Source: Lepidodermella squamata
Lineage: Eukaryota; Animalia; Gastrotricha
Length of the DNA: 64,000 bases
Direction: 5' to 3'
Assembly: GCA_047495785.1 (NCBI GenBank)
Contig: JBLDXI010000014.1
Location: 372,001-436,000 of the forward strand
The translations under genes and the position numbers were made by a program. Positions 5,976 through 23,847 of this stretch are shown here, piece after piece; position 1 is the first letter of the stretch; each line of letters begins with the position of its first letter. The notes under the pieces were generated by a model. The model worked only from the letters and a program-made list of their open reading frames with translations. It was not told the origin of the DNA and ran no database searches.

Positions 5976-7852
5976 ATGGCTGAAACTGGCGAAACCGCCT
6001 TATTAATGCTGATATCTACGATATCGGTAATCGGAGCGATTGGCAATTTGATCCTGCTGACTTTTTTCATCCGCAAAATGTGTAACCAAACTTCGTCCAA
6101 ATCCGGCAGTTTGCTGACCTCAATCTCGAATCAGCGAATGACAACAACCACGTTCATCCTAGTGCTGTCAGCTAACGACCTAGTCGCTTGCATTCTAGTC
6201 ATGCCGATGACAATTATTTACGAAACGTCGCCGAAGTTGATTTTCACGACAGATTTTTCGTGCAAATTCTACCACTTCGTAACAACATCGGTGATACCGT
6301 TTTCTGCTTTCTTGATCATCGCAATATCGGTCGATCGTTACCTGTGCATTATCCATCCGCTGCGCAACTTTCTGACCCCATGCCGAGCTAGATTTATCGT
6401 CATAATTCTTGCTGTTATATCATCTCTGATGGGAATTCTTGTCGCTATTAATTTTTCGGCGGCGAAATCAGACGAGCCATCACGTGCTGCCTTTGACGAG
6501 CGTCTGCTAACGCTGCAATATGGCGGAATTTCGAAGCCTGAGGTTCAACTCACCTCCACTGAGAGATATGACTTTACAAACGCCACGTCTTTCAAAAACA
6601 CGAAGGCCCCTAGAGTTAAAGCGAGCCGGAATTCGAATAGAACCTTGCGCGTTAAAACTTTCATGACTTCATCGACGACCACGCGAAAAATGGAGCCGAA
6701 AAGTAACCGATCGAGCCGCATATCAATGCTCGCCATGCTGCTGCAGACTAATTTCACGAGTCAGACGACGACTGTGGATTATGATGAGGACGATCATGAT
6801 CTTCACATGTGTATGCAGAGGCCGATGCTGGGCGAATTCTCCGAATTCTACCATTACATTCATAATGTGAGTCTCCAACTTTTTTATTAATAATTTTAAT
6901 TTATTTTTATTAAATTATTATAAAAATATTAATAATTTTTTTTATTAATTTTCAGGCTATTATTTTTGGCTCTGCTTTTACCGTTCCTTTCGTTCTCTAC
7001 GCTATCATTTACTGCCGAATTTCCAAGCGACAACTGCAAAAAGCACGGCGAAAGTCTGTGTCCACGCAAATTTTACTCCAGAATTCAACAATGCAAGTCC
7101 ATGACAGCAGTCGCGACGTCAGCTCGCCGCCGCTAAAACATCGCAACAGCTCAGTTGAGACCTACGAGGATATTAGCAGTGACAGCGCTGATGTCGCCAC
7201 AAATCGCTTATCGACAGTTCTGGAAGTGTCGGCGAGAAACAGCGCTGAAACTAGCGAGCAAGTTCAAATGCCATTGCCTCAGGTGATTGTGAATAACGAA
7301 CAGGAAAGCTCGGCGGGCGGCCTGAAAATGCGCGCTATGTTGCCTTGCAACCACACGTCATGTAGTCCGAAACGCAGCGTCAGTACGTTAGCTCTGAATA
7401 CACCTGCCGATGAATCCCTACGGAACAGCAGTAGTTTCTGCGTAACTGAAGCTACGGCTGCTAAATCTAGCAATTACGGGTCAACAGGGCGGAGTAATGG
7501 CTTGGCCCGAACTCCGTCCAAGGTTCGATTCAGTAGAAACATGGTCACAACGAGTCTCGTCAGGCGGAAGGGGTCTGTTATCAGTGTGACAACCCTGACG
7601 AGTGCTGAAAGGTCAGGCCAGGTCAGGCTGGCAGCTACTCTGTTCGTTGTCACTCTCGTTTTTGTCGTGTCCTACTTACCAGCGCTGATAGCCAACTACG
7701 TCCTGCCGAGCATGGATTCAGCGTGGAATCGATTCGCCTTTTACGTGTACTTTGCTAATAATGCAGCTAATCCTATTATCTACGGCGTGATGAATCGCCA
7801 GTTTCGCGAAGAACTCAAAAGCTGCATCGTTCCGAGCAAGACTAATTACTAA
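5976..7852 (+). CDS. Rhodopsin-family (class A) GPCR, peptide-receptor-like; 2 exons (intron 6867-6955)
   Basis: TM1 GN, TM2 LSANDL, TM3 DRY, TM7 NPIIY. The splice restores TM5 (HN|AIIFGSAFTVPFVLYAIIY). Confidence 0.9.
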
Positions 7853-8723: not shown

Positions 8724-11700
8724 CTACCGGCCTCGTTGAAATCTGCTATCTGCCGAGACTATTTTCTGACACACCTTGCACTTGGACGTGTGGTTGCGTC
8801 CGGTTCCGTGTTTGAGTTGCACCGATCGCGGCGTTTCGCCGATGCGGTCACCGTTGTTGTCCGCGCCACCGACCGACGCCAGCCAGAAACTGAGGTCGTT
8901 CTGGTACACGAAGCAAGTGCCGCGCGAACCACTGCATTCGACGAACGGCTGCGGCGTCCATTCGAGTAGACACGAGCCAGGGCTGTGCAGCAGCTGGCCG
9001 CCGCCTTGAGACCCAACACCAGTATGCTATAACAAAACAATATCAATTGTCACCTATTTTTTTAGGAATTTTAATCAAACCAACCATTACGAAGCTGAAC
9101 CCGCTCCACAATTCACGCCAGCCTTGCGGGCATTCAGCATGCGTGTGGTTGCGCTGAGAATGAACGGCAATGACGGCGGCTGGGACTTCGCACACGGAGC
9201 ATCGCGAAATCACCTCTCGCAGACCTGTGCCATTCACCGGCATGTTCAGGTTCGGCCCGTGTGTTGACAGCCAGTACGACTTGTCGTTGCGCGATGCGTA
9301 GTAGCACGTGTCGCGGTAGTCGCAGAACAAGAATGGCATTGTGCTGAACCGCCTCAAGCACGAGCCGGCCTTGCCAAGGTCCTGGTTGCCGGCATTCTCG
9401 TCACCCTGAAGGAACAACAGAGAGTAGCCATCCCACAGTTTCCTCTCGCCAGCCTTGCACTCTGGAACGACCTTCGACTGACTGTGGCGGACCAGCAGGA
9501 AACCGGCTTGGGGTACGAGACCAGCGTTGCCTTTTTCACCAGGGCGACCGGCGATACCTGGGCTGCCAGCGCGGCCAGCATCACCCTTATCACCCTTGGC
9601 GCCATCGACACCCGGTTGGCCATTCGTACCCGGCCGACCAGGATCACCCTTGGCACCTCGCTGACCAGGCGGGCCCTGTGGACCAGGAGGCCCGACCAGA
9701 CCGGCGTTGCCCTTGTCACCCTTCGCACCCGTCAGGCCTCGCTCGCCAAGATCGCCCTTATCACCCTTCGGACCAAGAGGACCTATTTCACCCGGTCGTC
9801 CAGGGTTGCCCCGATCACCCTTGTCTCCTCGCTCGCCTCTGACACCCTTTTCTCCGAGACGTCCAGGGACTCCCAGTTCACCCTTTTCACCAGGACGACC
9901 CGGCAGGCCGCGATCACCTTTATTGCCAGGGATGCCAGCTTCGCCCGGCTCACCAGCAGGACCAGTCATGCCTTTAGTTCCAGGAACACCTGGCCGGCCA
10001 GGCATACCAGCAATGCCTTTCTCGCCGCGTGGGCCAGTAAGACCTGCTTGGCCTTGGTCGCCTTTCAAACCGCGCTCGCCGCTTGGACCAGTCGAGCCTT
10101 TGTCACCCTTGGTACCTTTAACTTCAGTTGCCCTAGAAAGCAAAAGTAAAATCGATAGAAAAAAACCACAATGAAATTCGATAAATAATTACATCAAACC
10201 AGGAAGACCTCGATCGCCCTTCATGCCCGTGTCACCCTTGTCGCCGCGATCACCCTTCTGACCTGGCAGGCCAGTTGCACCCAAACGACCAGGTTCTCCA
10301 GGCTCTCCAGTAACAGTCTATTCAAGTGAAATGAATGCATTTTTATCGTGAATATTTTAAATACAACTTACCGGCCCGATCTCTCCCTTAACGCCTTGAT
10401 CTCCTTTAGGTCCAGGGTCGCCTTTCGGACCTGGCGGTCCGTTCTGGCCAGGAATACCACCATTGCCCTTGTCACCCTTGCCGCCCTTCATTCCGTTCAC
10501 ACCAGCATCGCCCTTTTCACCAATCGGTCCTGGTTGACCTGGTAGTCCTTGAGCACCTTTTAGACCAGGAATGCCGTCGTTTCCTCTGTCACCTCGCTCC
10601 CCAGGCATTCCAGGTCGTCCTGGCTCTCCACGGTCGCCCTCGCGTCCCAATTCACCCTTTTCACCTCTCTGACCAGGGACACCAGGCTGTCCTTGCAACC
10701 CAGGCATGCCACCGTCACCCTTTTCTCCGCGTTCACCAGTGTTGCCCTTGTTACCTTTCTCGCCGTTTTGACCTGAAATTGCATTCAAAAATTAAATCGA
10801 CAGGTTTAACATGACTGTGCTGTAATTACCTGGTCTACCAGGAGCACCAGGTTGGCCGGGTTCGCCAGTTGTACCAGCTTCGCCCTTTTCGCCTTGTTCT
10901 CCAATCGGACCTGTGAGGCCTACCGGTCCCTGATCACCCTTGTCGCCCTTGTCGCCAGAAACTCCACGCTGGCCTGGCATGCCGGGCGCACCTTTCTCTC
11001 CTCGAGGTCCACGGTCGCCTTTAACGCTGTTGCCAGGATCACCACGAGGGCCGGGTTCGCCGAGCGGACCAGGCTGACCCAAAGGTCCAGGCGATCCTGG
11101 GAGGCCAAGATCACCCTTGTCACCCTTCGATCCTCGAGATCCAGGTTGGCCACGATCACCTTTAGGTCCAGTTGGACCTAGCGGGCCCCTCTCGCCAGGA
11201 GAACCAGCTATGCCCTGCTGACCAGGAGCACCCGGGGGCCCGGCTTGGCCATCGCGACCAGATTCACCACGATCACCTTTGTCGCCCTTGGATCCTTTAT
11301 TGCCCTTCGGTCCTTGGTCGCCTCGCTCACCGAGATGGCCTTTGTCTCCGGGCTTTCCTGGGAGTCCAGGGTTTCCAGAAGGACCATCACTAAAAGATAA
11401 TGAGTTGTCATGGTCAATTGACATCTCAAACAATGATTAGCTTACTTTCCACGATCACCTTTAGGTCCACGAGCACCAGGAAGGCCGGGAGCGCCAGCAT
11501 CTCCAGGTCGCCCTCTGTTTCCTTTCAGGCCCATATCACCCTTCTTGCCGAGAAGGCCGGCCTCGCCTAAGATAAAGAAATTATTGGAGACTAAGTTAGG
11601 CCGTGTAAAACAAATTTACCCTTATTTCCTTTATCGCCACGTTCGCCAGGCTGCCCAGCAGTACCTTTCTCGCCAGAATCACCTTTCGGGCCTTGCTTGC

Positions 11701-14700
11701 CCTCAAGTCCGGGTGGGCCAGGAGGCCCCATATCACCCTTGTCACCACGCGATCCAGGAATACCGACTTGGCCTTGAGGCCCAGTTTGGCCAGCCTCGCC
11801 TTTGGAGCCTGGCTTTCCGGATTCTCCTCGTAAACCCGGTTCACCCTTGTCGCCCTTCAGGCCCTTAGCGCCGGTTCCAGGAACACCAGGCTCGCCATCT
11901 CGTCCTGGAGATCCAGGGAAACCAGGCACACCTGGATCACCTTTCAGGCCTGACTTCCCGGAGTCACCCTTCGGGCCAGCAGGACCACGCTCGCCGGTCA
12001 TACCGCGCGGGCCAATGGGACCTGGGTCGCCGATGGGACCGATTGGGCCAGGCGGACCTTTCATACCAGGCACACCAGGATCACCTTGGAAGCAGAAACA
12101 ACTCGTAAAGTATGTCGAGGAAGAATTTAAAAATCCAACTCACCCTTCTTTCCGGGCATTCCAGCGGGGCCAGGTTCGCCGTTGTCACCCCTTTCACCAG
12201 GCTCACCACGCGGACCCGGAGGTCCTTTGACTAACTCGACAGAGGCTAAATCAGGGGAAATAAAATTTTAGTTCAGACGAATGAAGATTTTCGGGTAACT
12301 CACATTTAGCATCAGGGCCGGGCGGTCCACTGGGTCCACGGTCACCCTTTTCACCCAATGGTCCAGAGTCGCCTTGTGGTCCAGGCAAGCCGACGCCAAC
12401 ATCTGGAAATAAATAGCATGTTTTAATCCATAATTACATTTTTAATTAAAGTGACTCACCTCCTTTGTCTCCTTTAGGTCCGATAGGTCCAACTTCTCCA
12501 GGGTTACCTGGTTGCCCGGCGATACCACGAGCGCCCTAAAAGATCGAAAAAGGAGTTATTAAGAGCTACTATGCCTACTAATATTGAACTTACCGGTGGA
12601 CCAGGTGGCCCGACAGGACCTTTCTCGCCCTGGCGTCCAACAGGACCAACAGGACCGATTTCGCCTTGGAAACCTGGATCGCCCTTTTCGCCTCGTTCTC
12701 CGGGTAGACCAGATTCGCCCTTGATAATCATCGGCTCGGCGTCAGTTCCTAGTAAATCAAATTGGTAACGTAACGCACCATGAGTAATCATCAGCCATAC
12801 TCACCTCTATCTCCCTTGTCACCTTTCGTGCCGCGCTGCCCAGAAGTGCCCTGTGGCAGATAATAATGAATGGTTAATAATAGTTACTGGCTATCCGTTG
12901 AAAGCTTACGGGTGAGCCTGCCTGACCGGGCTGGCCAGGCTGACCGTCTTCACCGCGAGGACCAGGTGGGCCTTGAAGACCGCGATCACCAGGCCGCCCA
13001 GGTCTACCGCGCTTTCCGGGCATGCCGCCAAGACCTTTCTCACCCTTCGCTCCATTCTGACAGGTTCGACACGCTTGGCCATCTCGACCGCGATCACCTT
13101 TGTCACCTTTACCGCCAGGTTTGCCACTCGAGCCGTGAAGACCTTTCTCTCTATAATATAGAAATATGTTAATCGTGGATTTTCATTTCATAAATAAGTA
13201 CGTACCCTTTCATTCCAGGCTCTCCAGGCGCACCAGGACGACCTGCGAGTGGTAACATTTAAATTTGACCAGTAATAAACCGATTTGAAACCAACCTGTT
13301 ATGGTGGATCCAGGAGGCCCTGATGGACCGCGGTCACCCTTATCTCCCCGATCGCCACGAGCTCCAGGGAGACCTGGATTACCCTTTTCGCCGAGGTCGC
13401 CCTTTGTGCCAATGCCACGATCGCCCTTCGGACCGGGTTCGCCCTTCTCGCCTGAGACACCCTTTTCTCCAGTGGCGCCGTGTTTGCCGGCCAATCCGGG
13501 GATGCCTTTTTCGCCTTTAGGGCCGAGGTCCCCTCGTTCACCAGGGTTGCCTTCGGGTCCGGGGATACCAGGCATTCCAGGCGTGCCCCGATCACCTTTG
13601 TCGCCTCGAGGTCCTTCGGGGCCTCTTTCGCCCGGCAAGCCCGGATCTCCGGTATCACCCTTAGGTCCTTCGCGACCCGGTAAGCAAATGGAAGCTAAAA
13701 TACGAAAAATATAAGTAAAAAATTGTTTTCAACATCGTGAAAGATTTCTTGCCATTTCCAGGAGGGCCTGGAGGTCCTCGATCACCCTTATGCCCATCTC
13801 TTCCTTCTGGACCGCGATCACCCGGTCCACCAGGCAAGCCTCGATCACCAGGGCTGCCAGGACGTCCAGGAGATCCCTAGAATATTAAATGAAGTGAAAT
13901 AAGGCAACAGGTTAAATTATCAAATTACGTTTGGTCCCATCGGTCCAGGCTCTCCGGGCTGGCCAGGTCGTCCACGTTCACCAGGTAAACCGCCAATGCC
14001 TTTTTCGCCCTTCTCTCCTCGTTCGCCAGGGGTGCCCTGAAAGCATAACGATTAAATCCAGAAGAATAGGCTAAATTCCAAACTCTACCTTCATGCCCTG
14101 AATGCCAGGGAATCCCTGATCGCCCTTCAGACCTGCGTCGCCTTTATCACCTTTCTCACCCTTGCTGCCCTTAGGGCCAACCCATTCGGTTTTCGTTGAA
14201 TTCAGGTAGCTTCCGAAATCACCAGGTGGGCCAGGCAGACCTCGGTCACCCTTTTGACCTTTTTCGCCAAGCATCCTTAATTAGAAGCAATCGATGATGA
14301 TGATGATGATGAATAATCACGCCTTTTAAGAACTTACGAGACACCCGGGTAACCTTTGTCACCCTTGGGACCATCGCGGCCTTCACGGCCAGGTTTTCCA
14401 CGAGGCCCAATGTCTCCTCGATCGCCCTTATCGCCAAGTTCACCCTTGTCGCCCATTGGGCCACGTTCTCCCGGGAGGCCTCGTTCGCCTTTCTCTCCGG
14501 ACGGACCAGACACGACCGATCGCTCGCCTTGAGGTCCCTTAGGTCCGGGAGGACCGCGAGGTCCAGGTTGGCCTGGTTGGCCGGACGGTCCAGGTAAACC
14601 GTGTTCACCCTTTGTGCCATTGCAGCCGTCACGGCCGGGCGCTCCACGAGGTCCAGCAGTGCCTGGGTAGCCCTAAATTCGGATAAAAAATTTCGAGTTC

Positions 14701-15342
14701 TATTCGCATTTGAAGAATAGATCTCAACAAACCGGAATGCCAGGTACACCAGGAAAACCGGGCGCACCAGCGCGGCCTTGATCGCCCTTGAAACCTGGGC
14801 TGCCCGGAAGACCCAATTCGCCCTTGTCGCCTTTCGCACCTTCAGGGCCCTCCGGACCAGGAAAGCCTTGAGTACCTTTCTCGCCGACTGGGCCTATAGG
14901 TCCAGGTTCACCTTGGTCACCTCGTTCCGCAACACAGCGGCAACCTCGGTCGCACAACTTGGGATCACAGTCTATTAGCTACGGGTAAGAAATCAAAACT
15001 AGGTTAAAAGGACCCATTTCGCAAATGTCGAAACTTACGGCGGAGGTTGAGATAGAAAACGCAGAAAATAGTATTAACAACGATAAGGTGGCACTGTAGG
15101 TAGAATCACAAATAAGTTTTGACGGCAGTTCTATAGATCCAGGTTGAAGCTTACCGATAGAACTTGACTGAAGAAGGGTTAAAATATCGATAATAAATTT
15201 GAGGGGGCGAGGATAGATGATGGCTGGCTGCTGAGCAACAAGACTCGGGCGCTGATTGGCCTCGTTGCCGGCCGCGCCTTCTCGCTTCGCCACCGCCAGC
15301 CCGAGCTGGATCGAGCGGCATCAGTTCATCCAGCCGTAGCAT
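8724..15342 (-). CDS. Type IV collagen alpha chain (alpha2-like), multi-exon
   Basis: 7S Cys motifs ([22 protein letters not shown]), long interrupted Gly-X-Y, and a complete two-repeat NC1 ([26 protein letters not shown]; intron 9027-9084; ..PGSCL..FWLA..CKVC). 5' exons inferred at 15342-15155 and about 15094-15039, with the next exon from 14978. Start codon less certain. Confidence 0.95.
14293..14312. repeat. Short intronic (GAT)n microsatellite
   Basis: gatgatgatgatgatgatga inside a collagen intron. Confidence 0.7.
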
Positions 15343-15399: not shown

Positions 15400-18300
15400 T
15401 TTTTCGTAAATAAACACCGCAAAAAGTATGGTTTTTTTTATAAAATCTGCGTCGATCTAGATTTTAACGGAATAAATACCAAAGTTACTATTAAAAAGTT
15501 CAAGACGTTAAAACATAGTATCTAGTATCTAGTAATACACGTGAATTTCTTCGAAATATTAACAGAGCTGAGAAGCTTGCTTTGTTGATTTAGTCCATTT
15601 GCGTCAAATCCGGTGGGACGTATCGCATGACAAGACACGCGCGCTAAAGCGACGGCCGCTGTCATCGTCAGGCCTGTTAATGGGCAGGAGGACGAGGGGA
15701 AGAAGGAGGAGGAGGACGGGCCGGCAAACATTCGCACCAGCTCTCGCGATACGGCCGCAAGTGGGCGCGCGCGCACACATACACACACACGTGCAAAGCG
15801 AGAGCGAGAGTGCGCGCAAAAATAAGCGCGCATGTTCTTTACGCGCGCGCGCGAGCGCTGCAAAAACGTAGAGCGTTTATTTACGCGGGCGGCTGCGATG
15901 CCTTGTTGTGATTATTGTTTAGGGCCGTGGATGGCTTGGAGACACCCGCGGTGGTTAAACGGCGGCATTGTCTCGACCGGGTGTGGTAGAACCGGGCGCT
16001 GGTAAACAGACGCGAGCTGCTGGCGGGTAATGGTGCCAAAACAATGCGCGTGCCCGGGTTGTTCCTTATTAGTAACGATGGCGCTGATGACGATAATAAT
16101 AATGTCGAGGTATAATGTGGCTCGAAAACAATCTTGTCAGTGGCGCGGCGCGCTTCGGCGGCAAGGCACACCGTGACATGCGGCGTTTGTTTGCGCGCGC
16201 TCGGGCCCTACACGCACGTCGCCGCACAGGTAGTGCCGCGCCGTCGCGCCGCGTTTCTCGCTAAAAACGGGCGATGGGGCGATGGGGCCGGGCAGCATCG
16301 GCGGGCGTTATTGTCATGTTTTGTTGTGGCCCGCTCGAAATCAAGTAGCCGCTACAATCGACTCGCGGCCGGACGAGATGACTGTTGGTAAATATATAAG
16401 AAACCCTATGGTTGTTGTAGTAATAATACAGCCGTAAATAACAGCGCTATTTTTGGGCATCGATGCAGCTCCGATTGCTTGAAGAGTGAGTGGACGCAAG
16501 CCGGCGTCCAAGTCCGGCGAACCAACCAAACATATGTGATTTTCGCTGAATGGCTGCAAATAATACCAACACCATTAATAATAATAATAGTAATATAATG
16601 CAAAATACTTAATTGTTGTTGTTACTAACAATACCGCCAAAGCTTTTGAAAAGGCTTCCGCGCCACTGCAATGATACCTAATCAAAATAATAATAATAAT
16701 AGTGCGGCTCTCTCAGAAGTGGCCAGCCCACTATAAAAAATATATCGAGCACTGGTGGCCGGTGGTTAGTTAGTTAACTTATTGCTTCCGCGTGCTTGTT
16801 GCCATTTATTTGTAAAAATAAGCATGCGCGTATCCTGGACAGCGGAGCCGCGCCTTTTTATTGCCGCCGCGCGTTGATGATGTAGCCAACGCAGCCGCTG
16901 ATCAGTCGAGCACGAAAAAATGCCTGTGTTTGGCTACTGCTACTACTATCATCGGCCTTCGCGATGCACGCTATTAATCGACGGTAGATTTTCAGCGCAT
17001 AAATAATAATTGTTACAACAACAGCCTATCGATGATATGCTGCGTGTTTTGACCTGCGATCACTCACAGGGCAGTTTATTGCCGGCCAGCTGCTGGCCTC
17101 GTTACAGGCCGCGCGGCCGGATCGGGAATTCCAAGCTAAATTGCTCGGTACTAATTTCTACAGATAAGTGAAAACGATACGAAAAAAATGAAAATAAGAC
17201 CAGTAAACCGCAAAGCCATCAAAGCCACGCATAAGGAACCTATTTTTATGGAAATTGGGCTATTAAGTATTATTAAGGGAAAGGGTTGGAAATTCGAGGG
17301 AAAATCGAAAGAATTGCTGCAGGAAGCTATCGGGCTCGTCGCATCGGCGACATGGGTAACAATTAGGTCAAATTTTGAAAGGTCAAATTCCGAATCTCGG
17401 TTCTCGAATGCTAGTAGCGGGGAAAGAAGAAACAAACGATTACGATGACCTGTTGACAATTATTACGATACTTAGGTATGGCTGATAACCACTTACCTTG
17501 AAATAATTTTCAAAACTTGGTATAGTGCTCCGCAGAAAGAGAGTTATCAGTGCTCATACACCAACGTTTTCCAGGCCCTTAATACAGGCTACTTGGGTGT
17601 TACGCGTGTCCAATTATCGCATGAACTTGATAAGGAAAGGAAATCTTATGCCCACTTTCGTTCAAGAGTCGAAACAGTTAAAACTTAAATGAGCAAGTGA
17701 TTGATAGAATTTAGTGATCGATTTCGGTTGTATATTTTCGTGATTTAGGAGCAACATATTTATGGCTACACTGTTGTCATTCTTTAGCGGGTTAAGAGAG
17801 CAAGCAACACATAGGTAGGTGAATACCTGGGGTTGGGAATTACGCGAGTGATATTCGGCCGATTATGGCATAATAACAGATGGTACGAATCGGGGTGCTA
17901 CGACGACGTTATTATTTTATCCCATGTAGGCCGCTCTCGACATTTGATTGCCGCATTACGACTATTATCACACATGCACCGACCCGGTTACAGCCGCAGC
18001 CCGTCGACGACGATGGCGCCGAATGTCAACAAACGCGCCCGCAGCGAGTGTGTGCGCTCGCGCAGGCTCCGCGGCGGCACCGCGCGGGCTTCGTTCGGTT
18101 TTATCTCGAATATTATTACCAACTGCGCAGTATTATATTGTATAGATGGCAGCAGTATCCATTCGCAGCGCGGCTCTATTACACATCACAGGGCCTAATA
18201 TGTACAATAAATTCCGACCTGCGGTCATTTTGCGCATAGCATCTCGAGACTTTTCTCTTCACCTACACCGGAGAGATATGGGCGGCGTCTTGAGGGGCGC

Positions 18301-18800
18301 TGTTACGCCGCCCTTTCCTGCGCTGCCCAAATATAATACAAACCGCAGTGCACGATGGGTCGGCGCTGTATTAGTTGTGTTATTTTAACGGTCTGCGGCA
18401 ATGCAGTTAATTATTGTCCTAGCTGCGCGCCCGTCACTGTCCTTCCGGCGGCAAACACCGGCGTGTCCCCGTCGCCACACCGAGACTGCGCGATGGGGAC
18501 GACGGGCACGCCACAGCTGAGAAAACCGGCGGTGGAAATCGCTGCGTGGCATTCCGCTCGGCCGGCGCAAAGTGCGACACATTGTTGACACGGCACTCGG
18601 CGCCCGTTTCCAGCTCTCCAGCCCTGATGTTTTATTATCGCTCACGCGGCACAGCTGGTGTAACAATCGCTATAAGCTGCTTATTACAGCAGTCAATCAG
18701 CACGACTGGGTGATACCCGGAGCAACTACCGGGTCTCGCTCCTCTCGAGCATCCTCTCAACCCCGAGACACACTCACTTGAACACATCATGATAAAACGG
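15400..18800. promoter_or_regulatory. Long CpG/GC-rich non-coding region upstream of collagen IV, with alternating purine-pyrimidine tracts
   Basis: No credible ORF, dense CG dinucleotides, (CG)n/(CA)n tracts at about 15765-15860. Regulatory role is inferred. Confidence 0.45.
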
Positions 18801-19135
18801 AATCATATCTACAAACTGGCATTTATTCGATTTATTTACTTTCGGTTTTCACGCAATTGTTAACAAAAATTTAGCCATCTCGACGACATGCGAAAACATC
18901 ATTATCAGCGCTGATAATAAAACGTATGTATAATAAGTACGTAGGTGAAATCTGTCAACCTATTCTGTGCAAGAGATTTGGAAAATTCGCGCTGTACGAT
19001 ACCGCGTTAAGTACATGCTGTTGTAAATATTTTGATTTGCCACGGCGATGAATATGAGCTTTTCGTTCGATTGCATTTTTTACAGCGACACGTTGTCATG
19101 GAGATCGCTCACGTTGAATTAACATAATTACTGAT

Positions 19136-19362
19136 CTAGCATTTATTTGGCGTGCAGAATACGAAGATGAATACTGGTCAAATAGAATGAAAACTTTAAA
19201 AGATTTACGAAATTTAAAAATAAGTTTACCTGTCGCGATAATAATCAGTAACATCAGGACAAGAGCGATGATGAGCCATACCTGAAAAAAGTTAGTTGAA
19301 GGAAATTTAAAATGTTATTCGCGGGAAAAAATTACCTCGAATCCTTGAGGTGGATAGGACAT
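19136..19362 (-). CDS. 38 aa single-pass micropeptide A (exons 19362-19336, 19281-19230, 19173-19136)
   Basis: Splices via 54 and 56 nt GT-AG introns to MSYPPQGFEVWLIIALVLMLLIIIATVFIFVFCTPNKC*; paralogue with the same exon structure at 22.3-22.6 kb. Confidence 0.8.
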
Positions 19363-20113
19363 TTTCCTCTGAAGTGACTAACAAAACCAGTAAAATCTAT
19401 AATTCAGTAAGTTTTATTTAAATGAGCTTTTAACAAGGCTTGGAGTTACAAGATCTAGAGAGGAATCTGCTTGGGGAATTAGGTGTCATTAGAGCCACCT
19501 TAATTTGGTGCACAAAAAATGTGTAAACTTGAATTTTTCAGTTTTACAGGTTAATCTTTTTAATAAATTTCGAGCTATTTTATGCTGGCAACACAGATGG
19601 ATTGTGATACGGTTTCACCAAGTCTACTGCTTCAATTGTTAAACGGTATTGTGTTTGCAGGACGACTTGAAGGACCAAACGGATGAGAGCCACAACAAAG
19701 ACAGCAAAACACAACACTTGTCCATGCCGAGGTTGCAACACAGACACAGTTTAGCAAAATAATTTGCAAATATAAAATTAGCCTGCAACAACTTCCGTTT
19801 ATTCCGGTGGTGGTGGTGGCGATGTCAAAGCGCGGCCAGGTCAGCGGCGTTCAAGTGCAGCGAAACGCAAGCGCGTCGCGCACATATTATAGCGCGGCAA
19901 TAAAACACTTGCGCGAAATGATAGCCGTTTTTATTGTTTAGTAATTATTACAACACACACATTTTCACCGGCCGTAATCCCTCAATTTTGCGATGATATT
20001 ATTCACGATTCATTTATACAAACAATAATAATTATTGGATCAGGTGTTAAATCTTTTATTTTTCAGAGATGTAAGAAAAACAACATGATGTGTTATATTT
20101 GTTGTACAATTTT

Positions 20114-21491
20114 TCAAAACCGCTGCGCAGCGTATTTCGTAACAGGATCTATGAATTCCTCTTCGCCCGCCGTGCAGGTATCGTGCGGTAATTGATCGTA
20201 AAAATGGTAAGATTCGTTGTCGTCGTCGTCTTTCGCCGGTGAATTTTGACATCGTAACTGGGAATTTTGGGGGCTATCCCTCGTGACCGTTACAGACCCG
20301 CCCGTTGCTACGGTGAAGGCGCGTGGTCGATGAGGCTTGCGGTGTCGATGTTTCCGAGAAGTAGAGTTCACCAGATGACAAGGACTTTCGTTAACATCGC
20401 CTATCCTCGCCGTCATACTTGTCGATCGGTCGATTTTCGGCGTTTGGCCAGCGTACGCCAAGATGGATGATTCATCGACTGATCGGCCTCGCCATATTGA
20501 TGTTACTTTTTCGCTGAAATATCGGTAAGACGGCCGAAAACCAATAACCGATATCCTGTTATCGCCATTTCCAGCTCGTTCAACATCATCTGGAATTATC
20601 GTTTCCGAGTTTGTTGGTAGAATCGATAGTTTGACAGTGTTTGAAATGCTCGAGAATGACCTGGCCCTTCGGGTCGGCGATGTCGCAGCTGGGGGGCCGC
20701 TACTCGCCATAGAAAACGACCCGGAAGGTCGACGCCTCAGGTAAATGAAAACAATAATAGCCGTGGCGATGGCGATGATAGCGGCGATGAACAAAACGAC
20801 ACCAACGATAATGAAAATAAGGCCTAAAGAGAAATGATGAAGCCTTCGGATAATATATAAGGCAAAATTACCAGTTTGAGAATCAATTGACGATGCGGTT
20901 GATGCTAAAGCAGCTTGTGCTACAGGTGTGGTCGAATTTCTCGCAAAGGTGCTGCCGACTGAAGTTAAATTCACCGGTCGGCTGATTAAGATTAAATTTT
21001 AAAATTTCGAAGTTAGCATTTTTTTAAATGCTTACTTCGTGGTTGCTGCTGATGACGGCCTTGAAATGAGAGTGATAGTAACAGTTGCATTCGGGTTGTT
21101 GTTAACCGTAGGTCGGTATGTGGAGGGCGGAGTTGCGAACAAGTCAAACGGCGTCGGAGGGTCGGCGAAGGGCAGCGGGTACAACGTGAAAGCCGCTGGG
21201 ATAGGCCGACGAGCCGGTGTGGCTTGAGGTACCGGGTAAACTGACATATTATTCGAATTGATGGTATAGGGCGACCGAACAGTGGTCGTCGTGCTGGTGA
21301 CATTTGTCGAGGAATCCGCCATTGGAGACCCAGAAAGCTGTTTCGAACTAGTTCTCGCTCTCAAGAAAACTGAATTAGAAAAAATAAGATAGTAAAGGTA
21401 TCCTTAAAAAAGATGTGATAGGCTTACGAGATAGGCCCGAGTGTATCGTCTCGAATAGCGGCGAACCTGGTGCTCGTTTATCAGATTTTCG
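20114..21491 (-). CDS. Single-pass membrane protein with Ser/Thr/Pro-rich ectodomain; 5' end unresolved
   Basis: ORFs 21032..21364 and 20114..20974 join in frame (TTN|RPVNLTS). Strong TM followed by RRR. One more in-frame upstream exon at about 21491-21428. Confidence 0.65.
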
Positions 21492-22343
21492 CTGAAATTA
21501 CAACATATATTTTTAGGGACTTGTTTGTTTTTACGCGAACCTATTTACTCAACATGAAAACGATTTATATACCGGTATTATTAATGTAAGCACCTGACCA
21601 TCCATCAGGTAGAGGTATAAGAAGCGACTTACAAACATGGGCCGTATTTTTTCAGTGTGGCAAAAGCGGTGAGTCGGACGCAGCAGCAGCTGGTACAAAC
21701 TTATTGCCTGGCGCTTGTCGTTATTCACGCAACGCACGCGCGTGAACGGCGGCGAGCTGATAGTCAGTAGGCGATCGAGCGGCGATGATACATAGATCGG
21801 CGTTATTCTACGATGCGGCTGCTGCCCATTCGTCGATTTTAGTAAAGCTACACCGGCCGGGTTATTAGCAAGCATATCGACATGGTGCATTAGTTACATG
21901 ATTTTTCAGCTAAATTTACCTGGTTATGTCAGCAGTAAACAACTCTTCAATTTATTAAGGTGGCTCTTGGATAGCAAGAGCAATCAAAGGCGCCGACGAT
22001 GCGGAGATGAGAAAGCGGGCGAGTTATTATTGCGATGTGCGAATATATTGATAAATTGCTGTTATTATTTACTGGCAGACGTGTGCGGCAATAAAATGTA
22101 AATGTGCGGGAAGCGCCGGAATTGGCGCGGCTATTTAGCATGCGGGTGGGGCGCCAGGTGACTCGTCGGAGGAAAATTTCGATACAATACGCGAGAGCGT
22201 CGCGGCTCATGCTGGAATTAATTAAGTTCTGTTTTATTATCCCCATTGAAATAGTAATAATTGAATACAAGAGAGAGCGCGAGATCTTTGGCAAATCTTC
22301 GCTTTGATTTTTTACACATTGTCCATGATTTGTATATGCGAGT

Positions 22344-22592
22344 TCAACCATGAAATAGATCGGCGCAAGAGCCAGGAGTGCAGTAAACCAACAAAAATAC
22401 TAGAATCATATTGGCGAAAAATTGTTATTACAGATATGCTGCTTTATCACTTACCTGTCAGGCCCAATAAGATGATCATAAAAATTACTGATACAATGAG
22501 CCATGCCTATCATAGAAAGTAAGGCGTGATTTCTTTAGGGCTGCGTCTAATCGGCTTACCTCATAATCTTTGTGCGGGAACTCAGAACCCAT
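22344..22592 (-). CDS. 46 aa single-pass micropeptide B (exons 22592-22560, 22506-22455, 22399-22344)
   Basis: Splices via 53 and 55 nt introns to MGSEFPHKDYEAWLIVSVIFMIILLGLTVFLLVYCTPGSCADLFHG*; same intron phases and same 52 nt middle exon as micropeptide A. Confidence 0.8.
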
Positions 22593-23847
22593 TTGGCAGT
22601 CGTTGTGCGTGAATTTAGTTTTAAATATTGACCCGATATTGAAATTTTACACGTCTCTCTCGCGTTAAGATGTCAAAAAGTTGGTTATGGCCTAACAAAA
22701 AACGCCGTCGCACATTAAAATGCGCGGTTTTAAACAACCGTTTTGTAGCAGCAAAATACGACTACGGCACTTGCGGACTAAACGTGCGGGAGCATAATTT
22801 TGTTGTGCGAAAACAATACGATCGCCAAAAAATTGCCGTGCCACATTGTTAAACGGAAGTTAAGAATCAAAATGTTGCGAAGAGTTTTACGGCGCAAAAT
22901 AAAACGAGAGCCTGTATTGCGGCTGGTATAGCTCTGCCTCGAGAAGTTGCGGATTTAAATTTATTTCACATTTAATATTATTAATTCTACACTGGATGTG
23001 GTGAAACTCCATAACACCGAAAACCAAGTACCGAAACAATGATGTTCTTGGACCTGTTAATGAGCACGAACCTGGATTTCGAATATAATATTCAAGATCC
23101 AATTATTATACCGGTAGAGCTGGGAGAAAGTGGCGCTAGACCAGCATTTCCCATATGTAACGCAAACAAAGAAAATACAGGGAAAAGGGATCAAAAACTC
23201 TAAAATGAGAGGCGAAGTCATATTATCTCGTGGCCAGAAAAATTCAAAATAAAAATTTATCAAAATGCAATGAGAATAGTAGTCAAGTATGTCATTTGTC
23301 AATGGGATTGAAAAAAATTTGGTCAAACCGGGTAAAATACCGAAAATTACCGAACCAGTTACCATCGGGGAATTTCTCCATTGTCATTCTTCATGGTTTT
23401 CTCCGGTAAATTTTTCAATTCTCCGGTAAATTCGCGGACAAAAGATGGTAGTTCTCCCGATAGGTTTAATTTCGAAGCATTACAAAATAGAAAAAGGATT
23501 GCCCAACTTATTATGGGGCACGCTGTATACCAATTGGCACGGCTTCTGAGGTAAAGGTGGTAACCTGCATGAGTCTTGGCATGAATTCAATGAGTATCTT
23601 GAAAATTTTGATGTAACGCCGATAATTTGCGAAACCGCGATATATAACTAAATGTTTTCATTTTACCAAAATCTCCTTTATTCCAAATTGAGTTGATACG
23701 CACTTCAACGTTTAGTTTATCGAAGATCGATGAACGATTAAAAATCGATGCTGAGGGTTATAAATCATTAATAATTCACAACTTGAAGGTTGCAAAGCCT
23801 TAAGTTGGATCGCAATACAGCGTACTTGCTATGCCACAAGAACTGCA

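Follow-up and report, generated by a model that had tools for sequence, protein, structure and literature searches.

A tandem pair of small three-exon genes for predicted single-pass membrane micropeptides in the gastrotrich Lepidodermella squamata

The DNA considered here (the window) is a stretch of 64,000 nucleotides from the gastrotrich Lepidodermella squamata (contig JBLDXI010000014.1, positions 372,001 to 436,000 of the forward strand), and all positions given below are positions in this 64-kb window. Two small genes, termed copy 1 (19362-19136) and copy 2 (22592-22344), lie on its minus strand with a spacing of 3.2 kb and an unrelated gene in between. A previous inspection of the letters, referred to as the sequence-only reading, had proposed for them two three-exon models encoding 38 and 46 amino acids (aa). 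All two-intron GT..AG models with introns of 40-120 nt were enumerated across both spans. For copy 1 this full enumeration yielded exactly one open two-intron model, encoding 38 aa, and for copy 2 six open two-intron models, only one of which parallels copy 1 and encodes 46 aa. Both proposed models were thus recovered exactly, with the following parts:

19336..19362, minus strand: copy 1, coding exon 1, ATG at 19362, 9 codons, ends in phase 0
19282..19335, minus strand: copy 1, intron 1, 54 nt, GTAATT...CTAAC...TTTCAG
19230..19281, minus strand: copy 1, exon 2, 52 nt, most of the membrane helix, ends in phase 1
19174..19229, minus strand: copy 1, intron 2, 56 nt, GTAAAC...GACCAG
19136..19173, minus strand: copy 1, exon 3, end of the helix, C-T-P-x-x-C tail, TAG stop
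22560..22592, minus strand: copy 2, coding exon 1, ATG at 22592, 11 codons, ends in phase 0
22507..22559, minus strand: copy 2, intron 1, 53 nt, GTAAGC...TGATAG
22455..22506, minus strand: copy 2, exon 2, 52 nt, most of the membrane helix, ends in phase 1
22400..22454, minus strand: copy 2, intron 2, 55 nt, GTAAGT...TTCTAG
22344..22399, minus strand: copy 2, exon 3, end of the helix, C-T-P-x-x-C tail, 7 more residues, TGA stop

As can be seen from this list, each of the four introns begins with GTAA and closes with AG, and the intron phases 0 and 1 are common to both copies. This agrees with the sequence-only reading, which had claimed identical phases and canonical introns of 53-56 nt (here 54 and 56 nt in copy 1, 53 and 55 nt in copy 2). 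Its claim of an identical middle exon stands for the length, which is 52 nt in both copies, and falls for the sequence, which is not identical. With 38 and 46 codons, both frames stay below 100 codons and carry their own start and stop, and thus qualify as small open reading frame (small-ORF) genes. Judged from their sequences, both are unannotated genes of an already known kind, the membrane micropeptides, and appear to form a new sequence family. We consider it probable that copies 1 and 2 are complete, tandemly duplicated and separately transcribed three-exon genes for single-pass membrane micropeptides, which likely act as accessory subunits.

The evidence for this assignment comes foremost from the comparison of the two copies with each other. 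The peptides align without a gap over 36 residues with 14 identities, so that the shared motif noted before, P-x3-[FY]E-x-WLI...T-VF-x2-V-[FY]-CTP-x2-C, proved genuine. The BLOSUM62 score of the peptide pair is 105, compared to 21.4±4.3 (maximum 53) for 5000 composition-preserving shuffles. When either copy was mutated at random to equal divergence (48 of 108 nt), the score was 25±14, and a value of 105 was reached in none of 5000 runs. The aligned codons share only 56% of their nucleotides, and the identity at codon positions 1, 2 and 3 amounts to 0.58, 0.72 and 0.36, respectively (chi-square p = 0.008 for the effect of codon position; Fisher p = 0.004 for position 3 versus position 2). The comparison of nonsynonymous with synonymous change between the paralogues, which had been suggested as a check, gave a proportion of differing nonsynonymous sites (pN) of 0.37 versus 0.71 for the synonymous sites (pS), which are saturated. 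The amino-acid replacements between the copies are conservative.

Furthermore, the nucleotide similarity was determined segment by segment. It reaches z = 4.0, 3.6 and 2.7 for the three exons, compared to z = 0.9 (chance level) and 1.8 for introns 1 and 2 and to -1.3 and -0.8 for the 100-nt flanks. Similarity is hence confined to the three exons, and the limits of conservation consequently fall on the splice sites of the models. Depending on the exon, the score of the proposed frame is 40, 45 or 16, versus at most 14 in the other five frames, most of which contain stops; for exon 2 the sense frame scores 40 versus at most 12 in the remaining five. In the six-frame translation of the window, both C-T-P-x-x-C and W-[LIVM]-[IVL]-hydrophobic-T occur at these two loci only. 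Together with the codon positions, the exon-limited similarity forms the signature of an old duplication and of later purifying selection on the peptide. The selection on the peptide asserted by the sequence-only reading is accordingly supported on several sides, namely by the score relative to both shuffles and mutation simulation, by the codon positions, by the exon limits and by the reading frame.

Relatives of the pair were sought in the own genome (a 121-Mb assembly of 151 contigs) and beyond. DNA searches of this genome with each copy returned only that copy, and no third copy was found. Protein searches of the own genome with single exons (17 aa) returned the exon itself only; these searches are insensitive, as they missed the paralogue too. 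A pattern built on exon 3 matched the two copies and, in addition, one non-hydrophobic sequence that is a chance match. With one mismatch allowed, the same pattern gave 80 matches versus 101 in the control, which corresponds to chance level, and the six best of these one-mismatch matches were rejected as they lack an upstream helix exon. An acceptor-anchored pattern resulted in 8 matches in the own genome versus 2 in the control. The two extra candidates from this search were rejected, having neither a helix exon nor the second cysteine. The family thus comprises two detectable members in this genome. Word searches of 5.8 billion proteins, performed around exon 2 for copy 1 and around exon 1 for copy 2, gave no candidate; since the neighbouring exon of 286 aa, which served as a control, was also unmatched, this collection does not hold the locus and the negative is weak evidence. 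Exon-by-exon Pfam searches yielded sub-threshold matches to hydrophobic segments only, the metagenome scan with the unspliced pattern gave 0 matches, and no Rfam family was matched.

These results bear on a different explanation, according to which the two loci are relics or no genes at all, i.e. a duplicated piece of DNA whose expression has ceased, or a conserved element without coding function whose frame is open by chance. The existence of two copies only and the failure to find a relative anywhere (in the own genome or by exon-wise searches elsewhere) agree with it. Nevertheless, the synonymous sites are saturated, yet the frames have stayed open and the splice sites canonical in both copies, with conservative replacements; moreover, the similarity follows the exon borders and one reading frame only, and the empty Rfam search speaks against this explanation as well. 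We therefore regard relics or non-genes as quite improbable and retain the reading of copies 1 and 2 as genes under selection for their peptides.

Whether the frames are complete can be read from their immediate surroundings. In copy 2 the ATG is preceded, at a distance of 19 codons, by an in-frame TAA, and the interval is devoid of any AG dinucleotide, so that no coding exon can be spliced upstream of this ATG. Within exon 1 of copy 2 an AG after codon 4 might serve as an acceptor, but its pyrimidine tract is poor. In copy 1 a TAG in the same frame comes 6 codons ahead of the ATG. Both copies show an A at position -3, and in both the ATG sits 3-5 codons ahead of the first conserved residue. 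On the downstream side, the second cysteine of copy 1 is directly followed by the stop, the sequence from the C-T-P-x-x-C motif to the stop containing no GT, and the frame of copy 2 extends 7 residues past the end point of copy 1 before it stops. Beyond the two stops neither DNA alignment nor six-frame fragment comparison detected any DNA or protein similarity between the loci. In the fragment comparison, which covered the sequence around and downstream of both copies, exon 3 alone rose above noise and no further shared exon appeared. A global DNA alignment of the two loci with their flanks was uninformative, as the sequences are too diverged and became misaligned. Both ends of the reading frames are defined.

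The same observations address the idea that the three exons belong to a longer protein-coding gene, for instance as the membrane anchor of a larger protein, in which case the small frames would be incomplete models. Tiny exons with good splice sites do resemble internal exons, and the ATG of copy 1 comes after a CAG that resembles an acceptor. However, the upstream TAA of copy 2 with no AG up to the ATG, the retention of the ATG at nearly the same place in both copies, the absence of a GT between the conserved tail and the stop in copy 1, and the end of similarity at the stops all stand against a longer gene, which we consider highly improbable. The following description continues with two complete small genes.

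The signals around them and the gene in between were located as follows, where the poly(A) signal and the two upstream elements of the small genes are candidates:

22619..22627, minus strand: TATTTAAAA, putative TATA-like element of copy 2, 27-35 nt upstream of the ATG
22233..22238, minus strand: AATAAA, candidate poly(A) signal of copy 2, about 105 nt after the stop
21571, minus strand: TATATAAA, TATA box of the intervening gene, upstream of its leader intron
21427-21370, minus strand: likely leader (5' untranslated region) intron of the intervening gene, 58 nt
21322 (ATG) to 20114 (stop), minus strand: intervening gene, 384 aa, one intron at 21035-20982
19422-19412, minus strand: TTTAAATAAAA, putative comparable element of copy 1, 50-60 nt upstream of the ATG

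A second AATAAA is located downstream of copy 2 at 21956. For copy 1 an AATAAA at 19147-19142 overlaps the last codons, and more of these hexamers follow at 18836 and 18827. The elements TATTTAAAA and TTTAAATAAAA are alike and A/T-rich (TTTAAA, then AAAACT), which may reflect a shared promoter element or chance.

The coding intron of the intervening gene has a length of 54 nt (GTAAGC...CTAAC...TCAG), and its spliced frame is open, which shows that a length of 53-56 nt is usual for introns in this region; elsewhere in the window an intron of about 105 nt occurs. In the product of this gene the N-terminal half is rich in Ser/Thr/Pro and contains several N-x-[ST] sites; a single membrane helix and then a long tail come after it. 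The product matched no Pfam family, and its 286-aa exon is the one that found no match among the 5.8 billion proteins.

The arrangement of these units allows for another origin of the peptides: the small frames could be upstream ORFs, translated within the spliced 5' leader of longer, bicistronic messenger RNAs (mRNAs). Copy 2 would then form part of the leader of the mucin-like membrane-protein gene at 21322-20114, and copy 1 that of any unit following it in the direction of the type IV collagen gene described below. All genes concerned share the minus strand, the units are separated by only 0.75-1.0 kb, a strong acceptor-like site is located 48 nt upstream of the ATG of the intervening gene, and an acceptor-like CTTCAG is present 6 nt ahead of the ATG of copy 1. 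Against such leaders, AATAAA occurs at 22238 and 21956, after the stop of copy 2, and the acceptor of the intervening gene pairs with a local donor at 21427, giving the 58-nt intron, with TATATAAA upstream at 21571. In addition, the genes downstream of the two copies are unrelated, which leaves the small ORF alone as the duplicated and conserved unit. An origin from leader ORFs is thus unlikely in our view. Because of the AATAAA after the stop of copy 2 and of the intervening gene's own TATA box and leader intron, separate transcription of the copies and the intervening gene is favoured from the signals present, in line with two independent small genes.

With respect to the remainder of the window, its content is of invertebrate type, comprising very short introns, a type IV collagen gene and a rhodopsin-type receptor. 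The collagen gene is located at 9046-14921 on the minus strand. Its part at 9046-10143 contains two C4 (NC1) domains as well as collagen repeats, and its Gly-X-Y runs reach up to 14921; the rise in G+C at 8-16 kb is due to this gene. Between it and copy 1, about 3-4 kb downstream of copy 1 are free of recognisable genes. This region includes a G+C-rich stretch at 17800-18800 with overlapping long ORFs on both strands, for which neither a Pfam match nor Gly-X-Y repeats were found. On the plus strand at 5976-7849, two ORFs match the profile of rhodopsin-family receptors with seven transmembrane segments, one of them the N-terminal and the other the C-terminal part, and probably represent one gene with an intron.

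Both micropeptides share the same architecture. An acidic N-terminal stub of 9-11 residues bearing P-x3-[FY]-E is followed by a tryptophan-initiated hydrophobic helix of about 22 residues (about residues 10-32) and by a tail of 6-14 residues, the first of which are [FY]-C-T-P-x-x-C. On the Kyte-Doolittle scale, the most hydrophobic stretch of 19 residues averages 3.4 in copy 1 and 3.1 in copy 2. With the helix ending 6-14 residues before the C-terminus, it would still reside in the ribosome tunnel at termination. The peptide would then be released from the ribosome before insertion, and its insertion into the membrane would have to be post-translational, as for tail-anchored proteins. Once inserted, the peptide would most likely serve as an accessory subunit of small size. 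In this role its helix would contact that of a bigger protein in the membrane, such as a pump, channel, transporter or receptor, by packing against it, with the conserved two-cysteine tail placed at the membrane interface.

The fate of the cysteines would depend on the orientation of the peptide. In a cytosolic tail they could be S-acylated, and in a luminal or external one they could be disulfide-bonded or linked to a partner. Insertion of the tail-anchor type, with the N-terminus cytosolic and the tail luminal, is at least as likely as a cytosolic tail. It would render acylation impossible, as the cysteines would then be luminal, and palmitoylation of the two cysteines is thus conceivable only if the tail faces the cytosol. 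With regard to the flanking charges, the C-flank of copy 1 is slightly more positive, which argues for a cytosolic, S-acylatable tail, whereas the flanks of copy 2 are tied and hence neutral.

A number of points have to be set on the other side of the balance for the overall reading of the pair. The flanking charges do not settle the topology, and the regulation of a channel, pump or receptor proposed by the sequence-only reading is assigned by analogy only. The evidence for selection stems solely from the comparison of the two paralogues with each other, and pattern, DNA and exon-wise searches revealed no relative in the rest of the own genome or in metagenomes. Taking both sides together, the gene pair is best described as a well-supported orphan pair and as a real new family, to which a function may be assigned by analogy. 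A more far-reaching proposal, which we put forward tentatively and with a low expectation of its being correct, is that the pair founds a gastrotrich-restricted class of two-cysteine-tailed membrane micropeptides, whose task would be to modulate an ion pump, channel or receptor that is itself conserved. Such a class would have arisen independently of the regulins and FXYD proteins, and through the duplication the animal would possess two isoforms that differ in their tails.

Apart from their function, the two genes illustrate that tiny multi-exon genes missed by ORF tracks and gene finders can be recovered when a compact animal genome is read without annotation. They also demonstrate that the comparison of paralogues alone, based on exon-limited similarity, the codon-position pattern and conserved intron phases, can yield strong evidence for coding.

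The closest known systems are the regulins and the FXYD proteins. Regulins, which include sarcolipin (SLN), phospholamban (PLN) and the insect sarcolambans, are micropeptides that bind SERCA (PMC8396278). In sarcolipin the stub comprises residues 1-6, the helix residues 7-26 and the tail residues 27-31, and the tail is conserved and needed for function (PMC8396278). Copies 1 and 2 resemble the regulins in their size class of about 30-50 aa, and they share with sarcolipin the layout of a short N-terminal stub, a single membrane helix and a short conserved C-terminal tail. Like other micropeptide genes, they are small and multi-exon or unannotated. For tail-anchored proteins such as sarcolipin and phospholamban, post-translational insertion is the established route (PMC8396278), and insertion of this type would be expected for copies 1 and 2 as well. 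In contrast to these likenesses, no sequence similarity between the two copies and the regulins is detectable. The tail reads C-T-P-x-x-C in the copies and R-S-Y-Q-Y in sarcolipin, and the N-flank is acidic in the copies and basic in regulins. Regulins carry an essential polar residue in the cytoplasmic half of the helix, i.e. Asn34 of PLN or Asn11 of SLN (PMC8396278). On direct reading of the two peptides, this Asn, which is the mark of the inhibitory regulins, has no counterpart, as both helices are free of Asn. Polar residues in the first helix half are limited to a single, non-conserved Ser in copy 2, copy 1 having none there.

A second comparison concerns the larger FXYD subunits and leads to a similar result. 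The FXYD proteins (Pfam PF02038) are single-pass accessory subunits of the Na,K-ATPase with an F-x-Y-D signature and conserved helix glycines, and in FXYD1 the cysteines just after the helix are palmitoylated. Copies 1 and 2 are likewise single-pass; their helix is directly preceded by a proline/aromatic/acidic motif and directly followed by cysteines. Unlike FXYD proteins, they are much shorter and have no basic cytoplasmic tail. On direct reading, the F-x-Y-D signature is not present, the copies showing G-F-E-V-W and K-D-Y-E-A-W at this place, and no helix glycine is common to both copies. In the exon-by-exon Pfam scans neither copy matched PF02038. Since the defining residues of regulins and of FXYD proteins are absent, copies 1 and 2 are placed outside both families; as far as sequence is a guide, they are not members of either. 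By analogy, the two micropeptides may nonetheless work like regulin or FXYD subunits. If they are indeed accessory subunits of a pump or channel, regulation of the regulin/FXYD type would have originated independently once more, and this in a phylum for which hardly any molecular physiology exists.

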